A stretch of DNA of 62,641 nucleotides, the filler included, from Platydemus manokwari (lineage: Eukaryota), in the NCBI GenBank assembly GCA_037951405.1. It is 6 parts of 6 records of this genome, joined end to end, with 100 filler letters (N's around TTAATTAATTAA, not from the genome) between each part and the next. Parts side by side here need not be neighbours in the genome. Positions count along the whole stretch, not along the records: positions 50,986 to 62,641 come from JBBMOY010543329.1; 5 more parts are not named here. One strand, written 5' to 3'. Positions within the stretch are counted from its first letter, which is position 1. Each line of letters opens with the position of its first letter. Below are positions 50,986-62,641 of the stretch, one piece after another. The notes beneath the pieces are model-generated. The model saw only the letters and a list, made by a program, of their open reading frames with translations. It was not told the origin of the DNA and did no database searches. The translations under genes and the position numbers were made by a program.

Positions 50986-51414
50986 ATTCAATTTATCGTG
51001 AATACAACAGCTTGGTCACAAACTGTAGATGTTAAGCACATTGCCCTGATGAAGAACGGGAATAACCGTGCTGGGATTATTATTGGAGAAGGAACATCGA
51101 AAGCCATTCAGGTTTTGGGACAACCCGATTCGATCACGGATTATTATGCAGAAATGGATGAGCAGACATGGAAAGTATATCATTACGGACGTAATAGGAT
51201 CTGCTTTTCAAACGGCAAACTATGTGTTTACCACATACTGGATCAAGGAATTATGGTGGGTACTGTCAATGGGAAAGCGTTTAAAATAGGCGATGGAATA
51301 CGGTTTTCCGATCATAATTTTAATCTTAGCCCCCATTATGTTCCTAATAGTGGGTCTACCTCATTTAACCTGAAAGATGGTACGATTGAATTAGACATGT
51401 TTATTTATTTATGA
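50986..51414 (+). CDS. 5'-truncated bacterial-like (Bacteroidetes-type) secreted hypothetical protein fragment
   Basis: Open from the contig edge, intronless, and visibly richer in GC and CpG than the flank. It has a signal-peptide-like end TAWS|Q and the motif LGQPDSITDYYAEMDE..KVYHYG. Confidence 0.55.
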   Translation: MQFIVNTTAWSQTVDVKHIALMKNGNNRAGIIIGEGTSKAIQVLGQPDSITDYYAEMDEQTWKVYHYGRNRICFSNGKLCVYHILDQGIMVGTVNGKAFKIGDGIRFSDHNFNLSPHYVPNSGSTSFNLKDGTIELDMFIYL

Positions 51415-54400
51415 TCATGACTAATATGGGCAATAATTGGAACTCGTTGAAAATATTTCAATTTGTTTAAAAATGTTTAAATTTAAATAATAAACCTTTC
51501 TTAAAACTTCTCAAGGAGCAATTCTCATGAGTTTTAAAATTCAGATTAGATAGCCTCCGAATAATATGACGGCCACGTACGTGGATGCGATATTGAACAT
51601 GTGATTTTGTTATCATTTTTGATAACAGTTATTACTACACTATTGATAACAGTAATGAATTGGATTCTACTAATCGAATATTTGTTACTTAACTTATTAA
51701 TCATATTGATATTTATTTTAATAATTGTTGATTATTAACTTTTATATTTGATTATCGATTGTTAAATTGTTAAATATTATCAATTTAAGTTATTGATATC
51801 ATAATTAAATATTAATTATTAACCATTATATTTAGCTAAGCATTGACTATTTGAATAATAATTATTTGATGAAGTCGTTAATTATGATAGTTGATTGAGT
51901 TTTAATATAAAGATGAACAAGCCAAACTGAATACTAGATTAAAAAATTCGTTTATATATTGAACCGTGAATACATTTAGCAAGGAAAATATCAGTCGAGG
52001 ATACACAACGAAGTTTGAGAGATTAATAACAATAAGTAAATTTTAAGCTAGATACAATCAATTAGAAGAAAGTGAGTCAGGATATAAGCAACTCTATAAT
52101 CACTCCAGTTTGTAGCATAGAGACGACGATGAAAATGGATTTTTATAAAAATTAGTGACTTAAAATCCTTTGATAAAATATCCTCATACATAGATTCAAG
52201 GACTTGAAGTAATTACTAGATGGAAAAGCTCTTGCAGGAGTATATTATATCAAGGTTATTTTGCTTTCTCAAATTTCATCGAGAGCCTATAAACCAACGA
52301 GTGAAATTTTCGATAAATTAATTCAAAGAAGAGTGGTCATGCAAAGATCCTTTTCAAATTCGATTTCTTCTCATTTTCAAGAAATAACAAGTTTTTATTG
52401 GGAATTTGTGCTTGAAAACGAGAAAAAAAGACAGCAGCAACAAATAAAGACGAAAATAAAAAAAAAAAAATGAAATTATATAAAAACGAACGAAGTAACA
52501 ATTAAAAAAATAAAATAAATTCACATTCCATCGTATTTTATAGTTGTTATGGAAAATACGCACCGATGAAATAAAATTTATTTCACATTTTATACATACT
52601 CTCATTAAGATATACAAACATATTTTTCAATGTAAATTAATTGTTAGCCAGAACCCCAACAAGTGTATAACTGAATTTTATGTTATATTTTTATAATTAT
52701 GTAGGAATGTTATATTATTTTATTTTCTAATAAAGATGAAATAATTTAAATAAATGGGATAATTTTAAACATAAATTAGAATTGGATTTGTCTGCAGAAA
52801 AATCATAAAAAAATTAAAGCAAAAAATATATCACACAATAAAAAATGTCCGCAATCATTTTTCTTCAGGAAGACTAAATAAACTTAAAAAAATATATGTC
52901 AAATTTAACTGAAATAATTGTAATTATACATAATTTTCTTCTCTAAAATTCAAAACGGCCGTCAGAATATATACCCTTCTTTATTTGAAACCACTAGAAT
53001 ATTTCGTGAATACGTGTCCTGCACATTTCGACGACAGCTTTTAACTCTTTTAATGTAACACCAGGTAATTATTGTTTCATACTTGAACTTTTATCCAGAG
53101 TTCATATTCATATCAACCGATAAAATGCTAAAGAGAGTACAGATCTAAAGCATTTTTGTTTCTAAATGATAGTCAAAATTGTTATTGTTGTATTCATAAT
53201 GAACTTAATAAAATATCTCATTCGAAACGAGTTCAATTCCGTGTACATAAGGTTATTATTTGTAGCGTTCTTTCAATAATTGTTGATAAATTTAAATATA
53301 CTATTGGTTTTTATACTCTACTTAGATGAAAGTGTTGTTTGTTATGTTTGGTTTTACATAGACTTTGTAAACAAGATAACTTTAGTTTTGGAGGAATAAA
53401 TTTTATATTATCACCAATTTTGAGATTTCAGTACTTTTTAAAAAATTTATACTAGACAACGACACTATAGGAATAGGTCTATCACACAAAGAAGATCAAG
53501 AAAATAAAAGTTTAATCGCATACAAAGCCCGTGGAATGAACAAATGAGAGAAAGCATATTGCATCACTTGAAAATAATCACTGGGCATATACTATTTCTG
53601 TCTACATTTCGATCATTATCTGTATGATTAAAGAATCACACTTAGAATGGATCACAAAGCAATTAGATCAGTAGTAAAACAATTGAAATATATAGTACGA
53701 CATATTCAGATGTGGATGAATAAAGTTAATATATATTTGGACATAAACATGATATTTATAAAGGATTACTTAAATACAAATATGTTTTCCAGAAACACTA
53801 TGTCACATATGGACAATAGTAGCAGGCAATACCAGTATTTGACGCCATAACCTACATTCAAAAAAATAAAAAATAAGTAGTAAAAAAAGTTCACCTCAAT
53901 GAACTCTTAGAATATAGCTAATGATCTTTGAAGGCAAGGAACAAAAATTGTTTTTACATGTTTTTTGAATACGCCCCCACAACACAACATATAAAATAAC
54001 CCAGTGTACACAGAGTTCATATATTTTGTCTTAATTAAACAACTCATCTTGTTTATTGATTGTTAAAACATAATAATAGAATTAAAATATAATCATTATT
54101 TTAAAATATAATATCAAAAAGATAATAATCAAAAATCTCATGATTCAAGGCGCACCCATAAAAATTTGAAATACAATTTTATGAATTCTATTTTAATGTA
54201 TTTTTATTTTATAAAATTTAATGCTCTGCTTTTATAAATAATATTAATTTTGTTGTTGGTTTTGCTAAAATCCTGGAAGTCATAAGGAATCATATAAATT
54301 TCGAATGTCTGCCATGCTACGGTGTGTAGGTTCTGCATGAGTTGAAAGCCATTTAGAGTCAAGAAAAAATTCATGTAAACTAAATTAGAAAATCAATATT

Positions 54401-54589
54401 TCATAGCAAGATCGTTTTAATAATATCGATAATTAATCGCAAATACATTTGATAAACAGAAAGTACGGAATTGTGAATTGTGCTAAACGAAAGGTATACA
54501 CCGGACGGACTAAAGAGATTAATTTCCCAGGGAAGAATTTGGTGCAGATTATTATTGATGTTTCGTACTTTGGGGAATTTTTGTTTCTC

Positions 54590-55070
54590 GATTTGAATTC
54601 CACATCATCATCGACATTGAAATTGTTATGAGATGATTGTTTTAATGTGATGATAGATGCTGGATCGATAAATGTTTCCAGGAAATATTTCGTATTAATT
54701 CCATCAATCTTATGAACATCGGTTTCAAGCAAATATTCCAATTGTTGAGTCTCTTCTACAGAAATTGTCTAAAATACAAACTTGTAGATGAAAGCAAATA
54801 TAGAAGTGACAAATGATGGAGAAACCTTGATAACTTCGAGACATTGATATCCATTGAGAATCAATACATTATTGATTTTGAAATATTTACAATCATTATA
54901 TCGATCACACCCTTTTTGAATTTTGGATATTTAGAATATGATCGATATTGGATGGATTCTGGATCAATCAAACATGTATTGGTTTTAAACTTGAATTCTC
55001 CTTTAAACTTCTCCACAGCATCGATTTTCAAAAGAATTACTCTATCATGGTGATTGAAAACATGTTCTGT
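54590..55070 (-). pseudogene. Partial duplicate of two exons (with intron) of the CAP-Gly/ANK/RING gene (cf. 61508-62000)
   Basis: Long near-identical stretches (LEYLLETDVHKIDGINTKYFLETFIDPASIIT; FKGEFKFKTNTCLIDP). Frameshifted by a small deletion and diverges after VEFKS. Confidence 0.88.
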
Positions 55071-56430
55071 GAATATATATAAAATATTTGAAATATTATT
55101 ATTTATCATTTAATATTAATATCATCAATATATTAAATTATTTCCAAACTGGCACATTTTAGGCAGATTAATTCAAATTCCAATAATCATCAAAATAGAT
55201 TTTCAATGTAAAGCAATTCTTCGAATTTCTTATAAAAAATTACATTATATTTGGATTAGAATATTTGGTTCTTTTCTTATATATTTCATGGTTTATGAAT
55301 ATAATAAATCAATACTCGATCAAGAATTTCTCGAGTTATTCACGATTTCTTCAAGAGCTTTCTAAATTATTTTTGAAAGAATAATCTTACAAAAAACAAT
55401 TCACGTTTAAAACAAAGCGGATTTTTTTAATAATAAAATGATAATTTTTAAAATTAATTTATCACGGCTGGGTTCGGCACGTTTAGGTAATTATTCCATT
55501 CTGTAAAAATGAAAAATAATACAGTGAGAGTGTTAAATATTTATTGAAAACAGATTGAAAGATAACTTATATCAATCAATAATAAATGGATATCAAATCA
55601 ATCAATAAATGGTATCATAAATTAATTATAAAACAACCCATTAAATTGAATAAATGCCAGATTATCGAAAAAGATTTCATCGATATTCATGGAATCAATT
55701 ATTCTTTTTTTCTTGTATTTTACTCGATAGACCTCGATGAATTGAGTAACGATAAAATAGAAAAATAAGATTATCTCTTGCATATGATTTATAAAATTTA
55801 TTCAAGAATGATGAAATTGAAAATAATTCAGTGGGAATTTAGTTAAATTTTTTAAAATCTCCTAACAATTTATTATTTGAAAAACCGGTCAAAGTAGGTC
55901 AAAATGAAATTATATAATGAGTGAGGACCACTTCTTTTAACATTAGAAGCATATGGAATGATATCAAAGATTTTCAGAGTTATTTTATAAAAGCGTGACT
56001 TCGAAATTATTGAGAAGAGCGAGGAACAAGGTACTTGTGTTTTCTCTCAAAGTCAGTATATTAACATCTATTTAATAGATTGGATACATAGATCCCAAAC
56101 CTGTCGATGTGGTAATGAAATGAAGATTCGATCCCAATCAAATAAATCGTGCAATTGAAGATGCCACAAATATGTAAGCTTCGGAATTCAAAAAGAGACA
56201 CAAGTTCAACAATCCAGCCTTTTCCGACATTCTGAACAAAGTGTTTTTTGTGCACGGGGCTCACACGAAAAATTATATTAAAAAATATATTATATTTACA
56301 AATCCATAAGTAAACAAACAATTAACAAATATTGACAATTTTTATTAAAATGAAATTATTATGAAATTATTAAAATTTTTATTACATTTCAACTCTAATT
56401 GCCAAATAACTCACGAAAAATCATTACTTT

Positions 56431-57172
56431 TGTTAGCAGCTATTTTTGTTTTAAAAACCACACATTAAAATCAAACCAAAAAGACACAATTTAATTTTTT
56501 ATAAAATTTATTCAAGAATAATGAAATTGAAAATAATTCAGTGAGAATTCTTGATAAATCGTTGGACTTTACAAAAATATTTTGAATTGAATTTTCGTTT
56601 TTATATTAAATGATAATAATTTATAGTGCAGGTAAATCTTAAATCGTTTTATGAAATATGGTCCGAAAATAAAATTTTAAAATTGTGAATTGTTGTGCAA
56701 AAATCCATATAGATTAAAATTAAATCTGAATGAAATTTGAATAAAATTGAATCTGAATTAAAATTAAAATTTAATTCATAATAAATATCTCACATTCCCC
56801 TTTCTTTAAAATCTTTGATTTCGTAATTGTCTCTGTCTTGAATCATCTAGATATCTCATTACACGAAAACTCTAATTCTTCTATCTTTTAATAACTTCTT
56901 TTTCATGTCCAATCTATCTTTTGTTAGATCTATCTTTTGTTATATCTTTTATTATATCTTCTATTTCATCTTCTATTACATCTTCTATTATATCTCCTTT
57001 TATATCTGCTTTTATATCTGCTTTTATATCTTCTCTAATATCCTCTCTAAAATCTTCTTCTATAATTTACAGTCGTTGATCTTTTTACGCTCGATTCTAG
57101 ATGTGTGGTCGCCATGTAAGCCGCTCCTATTTTATAAAACAATACGCATCGAATACGAACCTGAAAACATAT
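56431..57172 (-). mobile_element. TRIM-like mini LTR element, copy 3 (truncated 5' LTR 57172-57115, PBS 57114-57105, PPT ~56810-56795, 3' LTR 56794-56431)
   Basis: Minus strand reads ...GCGGCTTACA|TGGCGACCAC and AAAGAAAGGGGAA|TGTGAG. The interior has a degenerate 12-nt tandem repeat. Confidence 0.8.
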
Positions 57173-57229
57173 AGTTAATTTATCGTGGAAACCAATGAGT
57201 TTATGTAGATAATAGAAAATTCACTACAA

Positions 57230-57905
57230 TAATAACTAATATATGACTAATCAGGATAAAATTAATTGTGAATTACATTATAGGAATTTACAGTTTTGTT
57301 TAAATAATATATTAAAAGTGAAAATAATTAGCGGAATTTCAAATATTAATCAAAAAAACATGATTAAAATGAATTACAAGAGTACAAATAATGTTGAAAA
57401 TTTTAATGGTACTTATCGAATATTAGTTTTCGAGGAAAAATCTTGAATAATGTAAGAGAATGTGAAAATGTACAATGAGTTATAATTGCCATTATGACAA
57501 GCAAGCAAAATATAAATGAAATATAATACATAAAAAAATTTACTGGATTTAGTGAAAAATATTTTCTATACATTACCATAAATAAAAAGTGAAATTAAAT
57601 AAACCAAATGATTCGAGATTTTTTTTTTGGTTTCAAGTAAAATATAAAAGTTTAAGTTTTATTAAAAATTTTTAATACCTAAATAAAAGGCAAGTACGAG
57701 TGTTGTGTATGCGCATGTATTAAACATTAGAACAGAAAATATCTATCAAGATATAGAAAATGATAAAATGTAAAAAAACAATTTGAATTTTCAGAAATAA
57801 TAAAAATGATTTATTATTTAATATCAAAAATAAAAATGAAGTTTAAAAATTTAAATTGTGAATTAGTAGGAATAGGAGATTGCTAAATTTATGTGTATCA
57901 ACAAT
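57230..57905 (+). mobile_element. Decayed protein-primed DNA polymerase B (Polinton/adintovirus-like) fragment
   Basis: Ordered motifs DKINCELHYRNLQFCL (cf. DK.NYV.HYRNL..YL), GKILNNVR (cf. FGKTMENVR), KVKLNKP, IRTENIYQDI and KFK.EL.G. Multiple frameshifts. Confidence 0.7.
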
Positions 57906-58071
57906 TTATGGATAATTTCCATGATTTCACTAAAAATTTTAGTTGTTCCTGTGACCCACACAACATCAATATTAATATTTCCACGTGCCAAACCTTGATA
58001 CATTTTTTTAACATTAATAACACAAGTCAAGCAAGGCATTATAAATAAAATCAAATCACAAACAGGCACTG

Positions 58072-61000
58072 CTAGGGTAAAAATATTCCCCTTAAAGATC
58101 CAATCTCTTTATAGCAGAAAGGACATTTTAATAATTCATCACAACAACTACTGCAGAACAGGTGACCGCACTGTAAAGCCATATTGATTTCATTGGTCAT
58201 GCAAATATTGCATTCCTATTTAATAAAAATTAAATCGATAATACGTTAATAACAAACCACGTTTTGCCTTGTTTTTATGCTATTAATAATACCGCATATT
58301 TTCAATGCATCTTCCAACGATTGACCCTGAAAAATATCTTTAAAACACATCAAATTATTCTTTGTAAAATACCACTCTCTCCAACTTGCTATTATATTCG
58401 AGAACAAGATTTACAGCTTCTTCTTTCTCTTTTATAGACAATGATTTCGGAATGACTTTCTCCACAATTGATGCCATTCCCTTTTGACAAGCCAACATAA
58501 AAGGTGATTCGTTATATTTATTAGCCAATAGTACATCAAATATATCATCATTGATTATTTTATTTATGACTTCTTGAGAATATTTATCTTTGAATAAATT
58601 AGTTAGAAATGTTTCACCATTCTCGAGTAAAATATTTTTATCTCTACAATGTTCCATGGATCTCGTAAATAGTTTTTCATCGCTTTTCTTGAGAGCCAAG
58701 TTGGCAAATTTAAGAAATGTCTGATCAGATACAGGAGTTAAATCACAATTATCAAGAATTAATTGGATTAATTCAATGTTTTCTTCTTTGATTAAATCCG
58801 GCAGTAAATATTGATGAACATCAAGTTTCAAAAGTCTTTTGTTACTTTGAATAAATGATTTGATAAATCTAATAAAATCAATAATTTAAATATTTTCCAT
58901 TATCCAGTACTTTTTATCTTTGTTTTCAAACATATATTTCACGATTTCAATTTCTAGGTTTCGATCATTAGTGCTTCTCAATAAATCCATGAAGTATTTA
59001 TTAAATAAATCTTTTTCATCTAATCAATTATATAATTATAATAAAAATTATATATTATCATACAATTAAATATTATTTTATATAAATTTAAATGGTCAAT
59101 TTTATCATTTTAATTCTTTGAGAACATCTCATAATTTTTTTAAAATACGAAATCGTGCAAATTGAAAAAAATAAAAAAACAATCAATCGAATTCAATCGG
59201 TTCACAATGATTTATCCAGAAAACAGTATTTAATTCACAAATGAAACTATTTTTCACCAATAATTTTTCTGTTAAATTTTCATAACTACTTTATATATTT
59301 TATTTTTCTGTTATTAATTTACATTACTTGATTAAGCAACTCATATTTGTTAATGATTTTTACAATGGTGTCTTTAATGTATTCTGATGAAAATTAAAAA
59401 TAACTCATTAATCATTATGAATGTTGTTAATCATTTGAATTTTTTATTTCCTATTGCATCAATAATTTAACGGAACCTTGAAGCATCGCTTTACAAAAAT
59501 TGTGTTTTTATATTTAACCATTTATAACATCGTTGTAAACTTAGCCACCAAATTCTCTGTCAATGATATATATAATCGATAAACTAACAAATCTTTACAA
59601 CTCTTTATTAAAACAAAATTATATTTATTTACAATGTAAATGGATTTCAATACAAAAACCTTTTAAATTTAGTTTTCATCATCAATTATTATTCATACCA
59701 AGGTGTTTAAAACATTGTGTGAATATCTAAATAATCATTATATTGATTACATACTCCACAATATACTGTATATTGATCGAGACTCATATTTTACATAAAA
59801 TTCCATGAATATTTAACAATGTGATGAAAACATATTTGATTTACATTTTATCAACATGAATCGCAGTGTATTTAGAGGCTTCAAAGTTGCTTGTAATATT
59901 CATTGAAATGCGAAGATAAAATGAGAATGTCCTTAAATATGACAGACTACCTATGGACAGAAATATTAAAGGTTATAATTTGACCATTTCGAACGACGGT
60001 TTTGCTTTTAAATTATTTATTATAAAACATTGAAATCGATATTGGTTCAAATAATCATGAATATAAATATCTTTTAAGCAAATCTTTTGGAAAAATGTTG
60101 AAAATGTCATTCATTCAGTCATAAAACTTTCATTACAATTGCATAACAATAGACACCATAATAACAAAAAGAGATAATTATAACATTAATATATAACATT
60201 ATATTTAATATATAATTATAATCAAAGTAATATTTCTACCATTTTCAAAACATACTGGTTCGAAAAGAGCTCCACATTTTGGATTACATTTAAACAATTC
60301 AACTCCACAAAATGTTCCATCAGTTCCTTCTTGATCTAGATTTTTCTATATTCAAATCAAATAAATAAATCATGAGATAAAAATAAAAATCCACACTGAA
60401 TCTAAACCAATCACTTCATTTTTACCATTTACAAGCCCGTTCCATTTCAATACACCAGATTCTTCACCCTCTCTAATATTGATTCTTTCATTGAAATTCA
60501 TCGAGGGGTTTCGAATCGATCTGTCCACTGTTTTTATGCAACAAATTGAATTCTCATCGATTCTTTTATTATTAATTAACAACGGTTGATGGCCCTCTGA
60601 AATATTGATCTATTATTGAATAATGTATGTGTTTATCCATTGATAATAAAAAGAAAGTAAATGTATCTTATCTGTCAATAATAGAAAAATCGATAATAAT
60701 AAGAATACAAATAATAATAATAAAATTATAAAAATGAGATAAATTTTAAACCTTCGCAAGCTTTATCTAAAATATCTAACAAGCAATAAAATAATTAAAA
60801 AATTGAAATATTTGACGTTGAAACAAGAACATTAAATCGATTTAACTAACCCGTCACACAACAATTTTCTATTTTATTAACTGGAATCAAAACCCCCTTT
60901 TGATTGTGACATTCAAATAACTGTTTGCCTCAAAATTTCCCATTTGTTCCATTTTGTGATTGAAGTCCCTACATATAAATGAGCCATTAATCGATATTTT

Positions 61001-62619
61001 ATAAAATCAAATTTATCACCATCTCGCATCCTAAACAAGGAATGCCATCATTGATTATTCCTGTCCATTTCAGTAAAGCATGTCGCTGTTTCAAATCACA
61101 AGTAAAAATTATATATTTTTCTGTAACTTGTTTTCCCTTTGATATTTTTATCGATTTCGGATTAATTATACAAATATCATTCACGGGGTCAAATATATCT
61201 GCACATAAAATGAGATATTAGCTAATATAATTGTTTATTATACATATCGATTTTATTAAAATTTCTGCCGGAACAATATAATGTTGTCGATGTTCATTAC
61301 CGAACAAATCGGCAATTTCGATATTTTCGAGGATTTCATTACCGCTTTTCTGGAAATGAAATTGTTATAAAATAACATTAACGATAATCATTCTAATATA
61401 ATTAACACATCATTGCAATTCATACCAGCTCGATAACAGCTGACAGAATATGATTGGCTCTGCACATTATTTTGATTTTTCCTTTAAATGATAAATCTTT
61501 GATTTTTGATTTGAATTCCACATCATCATCGACATTGAAATTGTTATGAGATGATTTTGTAAATGTGATGATAGATGCTGGATCGATAAATGTTTCCAGG
61601 AAATATTTCGTATTAATTCCATCAATCTTATGAACATCTGTTTCAAGCAAATATTCCAATTGTTGAGTCTCTTCCACAGAAATTGTCTAAAATGCAAGCA
61701 AGTAGATGAAAGCAAATATAGAAGTGACAAATGATGGAGAAACCTTGATAACTTCGAGACATGGATATCCATTGAGAGTCAAGACATTATTGATTTCAAA
61801 ATATTTACAATTAATATATCGATCACACTCGACTATTTCACTATTTTTGAATTTTTTAGATTTCGAATTTGATCGATATTGGATGGATTTTGGATCAATC
61901 AAACAGGTATTGGTTTTAAATTTGAATTCTCCTTTAAACCTCTTTACAGTATCTTTTTTCACAAGAATTACTCGATCAGGGTAATTGAAAACATGCTCTT
62001 TGAATAAAATATTCTCAAGAAATTTGTGAATTTTCTGAATGAATGAAATGGAAAATGATGAAATTTAATTTCAATAAATAATTTCATAAATAAAATTGAA
62101 CTAATTTATTTATTTAAAACAAATAATTATTGCGTTGACATTTACAAATCATTTTATTATTATAATGCTTGATTGCGGTGTAACATAGTTATCAGGTTCA
62201 AATCATTTTCACAAATATCACTTTTAAAATTCTCTTTTTCTTAAATTATTCATTTTGTAAGAAACCGATAAAATAATCGATAATATAATCTATAATAAAT
62301 AAATTTAAAAAATTATTAAATTTATTTCCCAATCCATCAATCAAATATTATTGATTAAATAAAAATCCAAATCATTTCATTTCAAACAAATATCAATAAT
62401 TCAACTCAAATATTCATCTCACATTCATTTGATCCTCATCTAAACTTATTGCCATCAGTTCCATTCGGTCAATGAAAAATTCAATTTTGCCACACCATTT
62501 ATCCACCACTTGTACCAGTTCATCTATTTTATAATTCTCATTTGTTGTCACAACTTTCCAATCACTGACATCATTTGTATTCGCCACAAAAATATTATCA
62601 ATATATTCTATAATGATAT
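58072..62619 (-). pseudogene. Multi-exon gene with CYLD-like CAP-Gly repeats, ankyrin repeats and a C-terminal Mind bomb-type RING (putative E3 ligase); 5' end off contig; carries disablements
   Basis: Phase-consistent exons 62619-62423, 62034-61744, 61686-61426, 61349-61244, 61198-61020, 60968-60851, 60596-60397, 60345-60240, a broken middle, then ~59019-58911, ~58868-58376, 58326-58261 and 58215-58072. Motifs: LKWTG..LGCEM..GTNGKF*GKQLFEC..KGV; GVLKWNG..GTDGTFCGVELFKC..CGA; NESPFMLACQKG; CNIC..NMALQCGHLFCSSC..CPFC. Confidence 0.8.
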
Positions 62620-62641
62620 CTGAAATATAAAATATTATTAT

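Follow-up and report, generated by a model that had tools for sequence, protein, structure and literature searches.

Can a single gene join CAP-Gly modules like those of CYLD, a set of ankyrin repeats and a terminal RING finger? This question is raised by positions 58072-62619 of a stretch of Platydemus manokwari DNA, which is 62,641 nucleotides (nt) long, filler included, and is called the window here. An original prediction, made from the sequence alone, had read these positions as a chimeric ubiquitin ligase with a Mind bomb-type RING. We analysed positions 50986-62641, the piece of the window that comes from JBBMOY010543329.1 (about 26% G+C, zero N), and find that it most likely carries an AT-rich, 5'-truncated gene which joins five CAP-Gly-type modules, ankyrin repeats and one C-terminal RING. 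We put the probability that the three parts belong to one gene at roughly 0.6. The encoded protein is probably a candidate RING E3 ligase that represents a new domain arrangement of known parts.

Gene model

On the minus strand, twelve exons (A-L) with GT-AG borders form a single continuous reading frame of 758 codons between positions 62619 and 58072. The exon borders were set by reading the DNA and by scripted border tests. With a stop density of 8.65% per codon, the chance probability of the open frames lies between 1e-3 and 1e-7 per exon. The gene ends in a TAG stop at 58074-58072. At the other end, exon A lacks a start codon and begins in phase 1 at 62619, directly after an AG acceptor (62621-62620). 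The edge of the piece thus truncates the gene, which must extend further upstream. Thus, the coordinates proposed originally were correct, and the predicted protein has at least 758 codons and an N-terminus that is missing from the piece. Most introns measure 42-76 nt, the exceptions being those between A and B (388 nt), F and G (254 nt) and H and I (1220 nt). The features of the locus are as follows.

62423-62619, minus strand: exon A, putative first half of CAP-Gly-like unit 1, phase 1 to 0, donor AAT/gtgaga, no in-frame ATG
61744-62034, minus strand: exon B, 291 nt (106 + 185), putative second half of unit 1 fused to the first half of unit 2, degenerate
61426-61686, minus strand: exon C, 261 nt (106 + 155), putative second half of unit 2 fused to the first half of unit 3, degenerate
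61244-61349, minus strand: exon D, 106 nt, phase 0 to 1, putative second half of unit 3, equal to exon H in length and phases
61020-61198, minus strand: exon E, linker and first half of CAP-Gly unit 4 (..LLKWTG..)
60851-60968, minus strand: exon F, 118 nt, CAP-Gly unit 4 (second half), interrupted in frame by a TGA (60932-60930)
60397-60596, minus strand: exon G, linker and first half of CAP-Gly unit 5 (..GVLKWNG..)
60240-60345, minus strand: exon H, 106 nt, second half of unit 5 (..GTDGTFCG..LFKC..), donor AATG/gtagaa, phase 1
59020-60239, minus strand: putative intron or intergenic gap of 1220 nt between the CAP-Gly array and the ankyrin-RING part
58911-59019, minus strand: exon I, begins the ankyrin-type domain, acceptor in phase 1, lacks a usable start codon
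58373-58868, minus strand: exon J, divergent ankyrin repeats, 176 amino acids, family motif NGETFLTNLFK
58258-58326, minus strand: exon K, linker exon of 23 amino acids
58072-58215, minus strand: exon L, C-terminal RING finger (C3HC4, zf-C3HC4_3 type), tail ..GIFLP, TAG stop

Small exons homologous to exon K occur in the related loci L001, L003, L005 and L006, and a counterpart of exon L is present in L003, L005, L006 and the protein P0047. Rfam and tRNA scans of the piece gave no matches.

The CAP-Gly array

Units 4 and 5 were scored on their spliced sequences (79 and 69 residues, respectively) against the Pfam family CAP_GLY (PF01302), for which the curated cut-off is 26.5 bits. Unit 5, spliced from exons G and H, reached 34.7 bits (E 1.7e-8, profile positions 2-62 of 65), and unit 4, spliced from exons E and F with an X at the internal stop, reached 28.0 bits. 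The two clear CAP-Gly units of the original prediction therefore stand. Since every unit is split by a phase-0 intron, single exons score poorly on this profile: the second-half exons alone gave E-values of 4e-4 and 0.029 (the latter for unit 4), and the first-half exons alone gave no Pfam CAP_GLY match.

The earlier reading also counted two or three more degenerate units upstream, and exon periodicity together with a linker motif supports three, giving an array of five units of about 90-105 residues each. In units 4 and 5, the first-half exon measures 179 and 200 nt, respectively (phase 1 to 0), and the second-half exon 118 and 106 nt (phase 0 to 1). Exons B and C have the sizes that a 106-nt second half fused with the next first half would have. 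The linker motif C/F-x-I-D/N-P-x-S-I is found in units 2, 3 and 4 as well as in the relatives P0067 and L004; in the linkers, CLIDPKSI of exon B resembles CIINPKSI of unit 4, and exon C contains FIDPASI. Furthermore, ..LFKEH.. of exon B aligns with ..LFKCN.. of unit 5. The open frame of exon B spans 125 codons (chance probability 1e-5), and exon C is preceded by a 57-nt in-frame GT-AG intron. The sequences themselves show no significant similarity, which weighs against counting them: the exons of units 1-3, A and C included, had no Pfam match at E<=1, and the scores of these units against a small family profile were equalled by 64, 17 and 207 of 1000 shuffles. To read units 1-3 as decayed CAP-Gly-type units is a reasonable reading that is based on exon sizes, phases and the linker motif and not on sequence statistics.

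Roughly a dozen types of protein are known to contain CAP-Gly domains; besides CYLD, these are mainly factors of microtubule ends or of tubulin folding. The GKNDG motif of CAP-Gly domains binds C-terminal EEY/F tails. This motif is missing here. Unit 5 has EGTDG, unit 4 NGTNG and the relative P0067 GGGDG, so that the Lys-Asn pair is absent and the units are not expected to bind tubulin or EB proteins by their EEY/F tails. If the units are what they appear to be, CAP-Gly would behave in this gene as a shufflable repeat, each unit being a phase 1-1 module of two exons.

The C-terminal RING finger

Exon L (58215-58075) matched zf-C3HC4_3 (PF13920) with 36.2 bits (E 5e-9, cut-off 27). It is the only RING exon, lies directly before the stop at 58074-58072, and retains all eight metal ligands in the pattern C-x2-C-x10-C-x-H-x2-C-x2-C-x7-C-x2-C. 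The best solved relatives in the PDB are the RINGs of RNF4, BRE1, cIAP and XIAP, and MYLIP is also among the matches; comparisons with the cIAP, XIAP and BIRC7 RINGs gave E-values of 5e-6 to 4e-5. A terminal RING had thus been recognised rightly, but its likeness to RING3 of Mind bomb was not specific, MIB1 RING3 coming 20th (E 1.2e-3) behind RNF4, BRE1, cIAP and XIAP. Judged by these matches, we assign it as a generic IAP/RNF4/BRE1-like C-terminal RING that is not specifically of the Mind bomb type. The RING has an aromatic tail, ..GIFLP here and ..RIFL, ..KFFL and ..KIYLS in relatives. IAP-type RINGs are dimeric and use the C-terminal tail to help hold the donor ubiquitin; a terminal RING with an aromatic tail would fit the same type.

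Might the whole protein be a divergent Mind bomb homologue, with N-terminal repeats of the MIB/REP kind rather than CAP-Gly domains? Its ankyrin repeats followed by a zf-C3HC4_3 RING, and the presence of MIB1 RING3 among the PDB matches, speak in that direction. However, the CAP_GLY cut-off is exceeded by both unit 4 and unit 5, whose only solved matches are CAP-Gly domains, the single RING scores better with RNF4, BRE1 and IAP RINGs, and the Pfam scan of the exons of the piece, which lie downstream of 62619, found no MIB/HERC2, ZZ or REP domain. We consider a Mind bomb origin highly improbable, and the scores of 34.7 and 28.0 bits exclude the SH3-like repeats of MIB that had been named as an alternative identity of the units.

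The ankyrin domain

The ankyrin-like repeats of the original prediction were borne out by phmmer matches to true ankyrin proteins despite a sub-threshold Pfam score: exon J reached 19.5 bits with Ank_2, below the cut-off of 27.3. A phmmer search of exon J against 1.84 billion representatives returned 385 matches, among them multi-repeat ankyrin proteins at E-values down to 2e-39. The long matches are true ankyrin proteins with 4-19 separate matching stretches, and these proteins themselves carry 11-40 Ank_2 stretches. An AlphaFold (AF2) model of the ankyrin region was all-helical with a predicted local distance difference test score (pLDDT) of 72. Foldseek with this model found nothing at E<=0.001, and many of the weak top structural matches are DARPins or natural ankyrin domains, those of cpSRP43, RNase L and Bcl-3 among them. 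On its sequence matches, we class the exon J region as divergent ankyrin repeats.

A TAA at 58888-58886 was considered as a nonsense mutation and rejected. It sits in a 42-nt intron (window positions 58869-58910), and L001 and L003 share the donor (AAAAG/GTwC) and the acceptor of this intron. The protein P0001 (L001 157-813), a prokaryote-style call on a eukaryotic metagenome contig, reads through the corresponding intron, which is open there. In the 3' half of the gene, introns typically measure 42-46 nt.

One gene or two

The original prediction took the array and the ankyrin-RING part as fused. Splice phases and relatives make a single gene likely; the linking region 60239-59020 yields no exon. 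The exon H donor (AATG/gtagaa) and the exon I acceptor (gattag/AT) share phase 1, which is also the phase between repeat units, and the position and phase of the exon I acceptor recur in L001. In addition, the first in-frame ATG of exon I (58990) follows the sequence DLFNKYF, which is conserved in L001, L003 and L007. Conserved coding sequence thus precedes the first ATG, and exon I therefore needs an upstream exon.

Among the relatives, L004 comes from another organism (GC 42%); there, a linker and the first half of a CAP-Gly unit continue in frame, over a 55-nt GT-AG intron, into the same ankyrin domain with its N-terminal extension. In Smith-Waterman comparisons with shuffles, its unit gave a z-score of 8.1 against the P0067 unit and of 3.4-3.6 against units 3-5; BLASTP of the L004 unit against exon E gave no alignment. 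P0067 contains the same type of ankyrin domain and a CAP_GLY match (33.1 bits) within one open frame. L003, L005 and L006 repeat the layout of ankyrin exons, small exon and RING, and P0047 holds ankyrin and RING in one frame. We also count in favour of one gene that run X1, the only sequencing run found to contain the locus, has multiple copies of the exons of all three parts (CAP-Gly, ankyrin and RING).

Several points weigh against a single gene. The gap between exons H and I spans 1220 nt, compared with 42-388 nt for the other introns, and a profile of the relatives' N-terminal extension run over 60239-59020 found only exon I and no further exon. Taken by itself, the agreement of the H and I phases has a one-in-three probability of arising by chance. 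None of the relatives examined has all three domains intact: P0047, a UniParc entry, consists of ankyrin and RING only, and in P0067 the order is reversed, with CAP-Gly after ankyrin. Moreover, run X1 is DNA-like, with contigs that span introns and no joint with canonical CT..AC ends, and is uninformative on splicing.

A rival reading is that of two adjacent genes on the same strand, the upstream one ending with the CAP-Gly array and a separate ankyrin-RING gene having its first exon in the gap. The upstream gene could read through the exon H donor to a TAA at 60207-60205, and P0067 shows how the array might derive from an upstream gene of the ankyrin-CAP-Gly type. That an ankyrin-RING-only product exists (P0047) and that the 1220-nt gap contains no detectable exon fit this arrangement; so does L001, which is non-coding for 150 nt upstream of its homologous exon and has an ATG 10 codons before the conserved YF. 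Yet exon I has no ATG where L001, L003 and L007 have one, conserved coding sequence precedes its first ATG, its acceptor phase equals the donor phase of exon H, and L004 joins a CAP-Gly-type unit to this very ankyrin domain over a short intron. On this balance two genes appear unlikely, and a single CAP-Gly-ankyrin-RING gene remains our preferred reading.

Two further observations concern the gap itself. Its ends are AT-rich and of low complexity (59025-59076 and 60174-60221) and can also be read as 28-nt inverted repeats. We set aside a transposon with terminal inverted repeats, since these repeats coincide with AT-rich tandem low-complexity sequence. In run X1, positions 59650-60284 are deeper than 59013-59650, and one contig skips 59627-60204 with a joint whose shorter side has only 21 letters; depth and joint hint at a repeated insert in the gap.

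Intactness of the copy

Is the gene in the window still functional? Exon F carries an in-frame premature TGA (60932-60930), a feature absent from the original prediction. It aligns with a Cys of unit 5 within an otherwise well-matching stretch, and the homologous gene in the close relative L005 ends in TGA; both findings weigh against an intact gene. A reassigned TGA codon was rejected, as TGA is the stop of the L005 gene. An alternative acceptor at 60921 (exon from 60920), 12 nt past the TGA, keeps the frame and deletes the G-x-N-G loop of unit 4. This suggests that the copy either is decaying or could be expressed through the downstream acceptor without this loop.

In the first case, the locus would once have coded for a CAP-Gly-ankyrin-RING protein and would now be a pseudogene in a fast-turnover family, a view that is compatible with a single gene. 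Besides the TGA in a homologous CAP-Gly exon, this is consistent with the loss of the CAP-Gly signature in three units, a broken fragment of exons B and C 6.9 kb away, the probable repeat insert within the long gap between H and I, and the last 240 nt of L004, which hold no intact RING. By contrast, all other exons are open and have good splice sites, the ankyrin-RING part is wholly intact with its eight zinc ligands, and the alternative acceptor would rescue the frame. We regard a dead copy as a serious possibility, though not the favoured one.

Copies and relatives

Contigs of run X1 with 90-99% identity pile up on the exons, where the summed depth is 200-570; the central gap and the 3' flank reach 5-60. 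One contig matches exon A (62389-62579) exactly, with 0 other letters, at a depth of 157. Another, with a depth of 147, differs at 2 of 413 nt and covers 61350-61762, from the end of exon B through exon C, including the introns on either side of exon C. Where contigs match the ankyrin-RING part or the gap exactly, the depth is about 14, roughly ten times lower, so the family is multi-copy; the CAP-Gly segments seem to exist in about ten near-identical copies. One further copy lies within the piece:

54543-55075, minus strand: broken partial copy of exons B and C, intron included, 549 nt at 88% identity, frame broken by the loss of 13 nt in exon B

The intron of this copy is as conserved as its exons, which identifies it as a recent dead fragment. 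No copy of any other exon of the gene was found in 50986-57900.

In public protein space, the family is represented by eight short metagenome fragments (among the matches listed; the phmmer tally was drawn from the best 150 of the 385 matches), one UniParc entry and one NCBI assembly contig. A metagenome scan for relatives gave one 1.1-kb locus, and the contigs of the relatives measure 0.9-2.4 kb. Further word-based searches for full-length relatives gave nothing new, and no mention of the L004 assembly accession was found in the literature. In L004, the CAP-Gly-type unit beside the ankyrin domain (9-347) consists of the first half only, spliced straight to the ankyrin extension. At the other end (1140-1374), the linker exon is followed by ..EELHL-TGA, which resembles the start of the P0047 RING exon, and not by an intact RING. 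L004 is possibly another decayed copy. The first 243 nt of L002, the contig with P0067, contain an open frame of 80 residues, which may resemble the C-terminal end of a retrotransposon integrase.

Together, copies and relatives probably define a lineage-specific, multi-copy, fast-turnover family of modular RING E3 ligases. A bolder proposal, which we rate as rather improbable, is that this is an undescribed, rapidly duplicating RING E3 family of a poorly sampled lineage, in which a variable CAP-Gly-derived array, shuffled anew with the ankyrin domain, would serve target recognition and evolve under conflict in a TRIM-like manner. If so, the near-identical and the broken copies would be the trace of this turnover.

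Elsewhere in the piece, an open frame of 142 codons enters from the left edge (50986-51411, plus strand). Its G+C content is 36%, compared with about 26% elsewhere, and it had no Pfam match; a neighbouring gene that differs in composition may end here. Downstream of the CAP-Gly-ankyrin-RING gene, 56931-57058 is a tandem repeat with a 12-nt period (10.7 copies, 87% matches, consensus TATCTTCTATTA).

Proposed function

In the protein as predicted, each unit of the array would comprise a CAP-Gly-type beta-barrel behind a short linker, with the first three units decayed and the last two recognisable. These units and the ankyrin repeats would bind a substrate or an adaptor, and the RING, placed at the very C-terminus with its IAP-like aromatic tail, would recruit the ubiquitin-loaded E2, possibly as a dimer. 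Microtubule or NF-kB-pathway substrates, as suggested earlier, are unsupported, and the canonical tail-binding motif is absent; the units more likely bind other peptide ligands, as the third CAP-Gly domain of CYLD does. If this model is true, a RING ligase equipped with CAP-Gly modules would direct ubiquitination to its targets in a new way. Two things limit the practical weight: the family is known only from short metagenomic fragments and a single unannotated genome, and the window copy has a premature stop.

Comparison with known proteins

In line with the original prediction, which knew of no described protein with the three domains, the CAP-Gly-ankyrin-RING arrangement was found neither among the database protein matches listed nor in any paper found. 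Four groups of known proteins share parts of it. CLIP3 (CLIPR-59) and CLIP4 have ankyrin repeats N-terminal to two CAP-Gly domains and no RING. The predicted protein of the window would likewise combine ankyrin repeats with CAP-Gly in one chain, whereas its CAP-Gly units precede the ankyrin repeats, are five in number and are followed by a RING end; the order of P0067 is CLIP3-like. Unit 5 matched the solved CLIP3 and CLIP4 CAP-Gly domains weakly (E 0.22 to 0.57).

Mind bomb proteins (MIB1 and MIB2), like other ankyrin-RING E3 ligases, also have ankyrin repeats upstream of a C-terminal zf-C3HC4_3 RING, but Mind bomb has two or three RINGs after the ankyrin repeats and the window protein has one. 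Like XIAP, cIAP1/2 and BIRC7, the window protein ends directly in a RING that carries a short aromatic tail, but it has no BIR domains.

A further parallel is CYLD, with its tandem CAP-Gly domains. Unit 5 shares the stretches ..V(I/L)(R/K)W.G.. and ..TDGTF.G..F.C.. with CYLD, and its top four PDB matches are CYLD CAP-Gly chains (E 1e-3 to 6e-3; CLIP-170 0.08). The CYLD-type assignment made originally holds for these top matches, but the E-values reach only about 1e-3, and the CAP-Gly domain of P0067 is closest to those of dynactin and KIF13B among solved structures; descent from CYLD is therefore not established. We read the resemblance of unit 5 as real but marginal, a weak likeness that is not family-wide. 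In their C-terminal parts the two proteins differ altogether. CYLD removes ubiquitin and ends in a ubiquitin-specific protease (USP) deubiquitinase domain, whereas the Pfam scan of the exons found no UCH/USP match and the window protein ends in ankyrin repeats and a RING.

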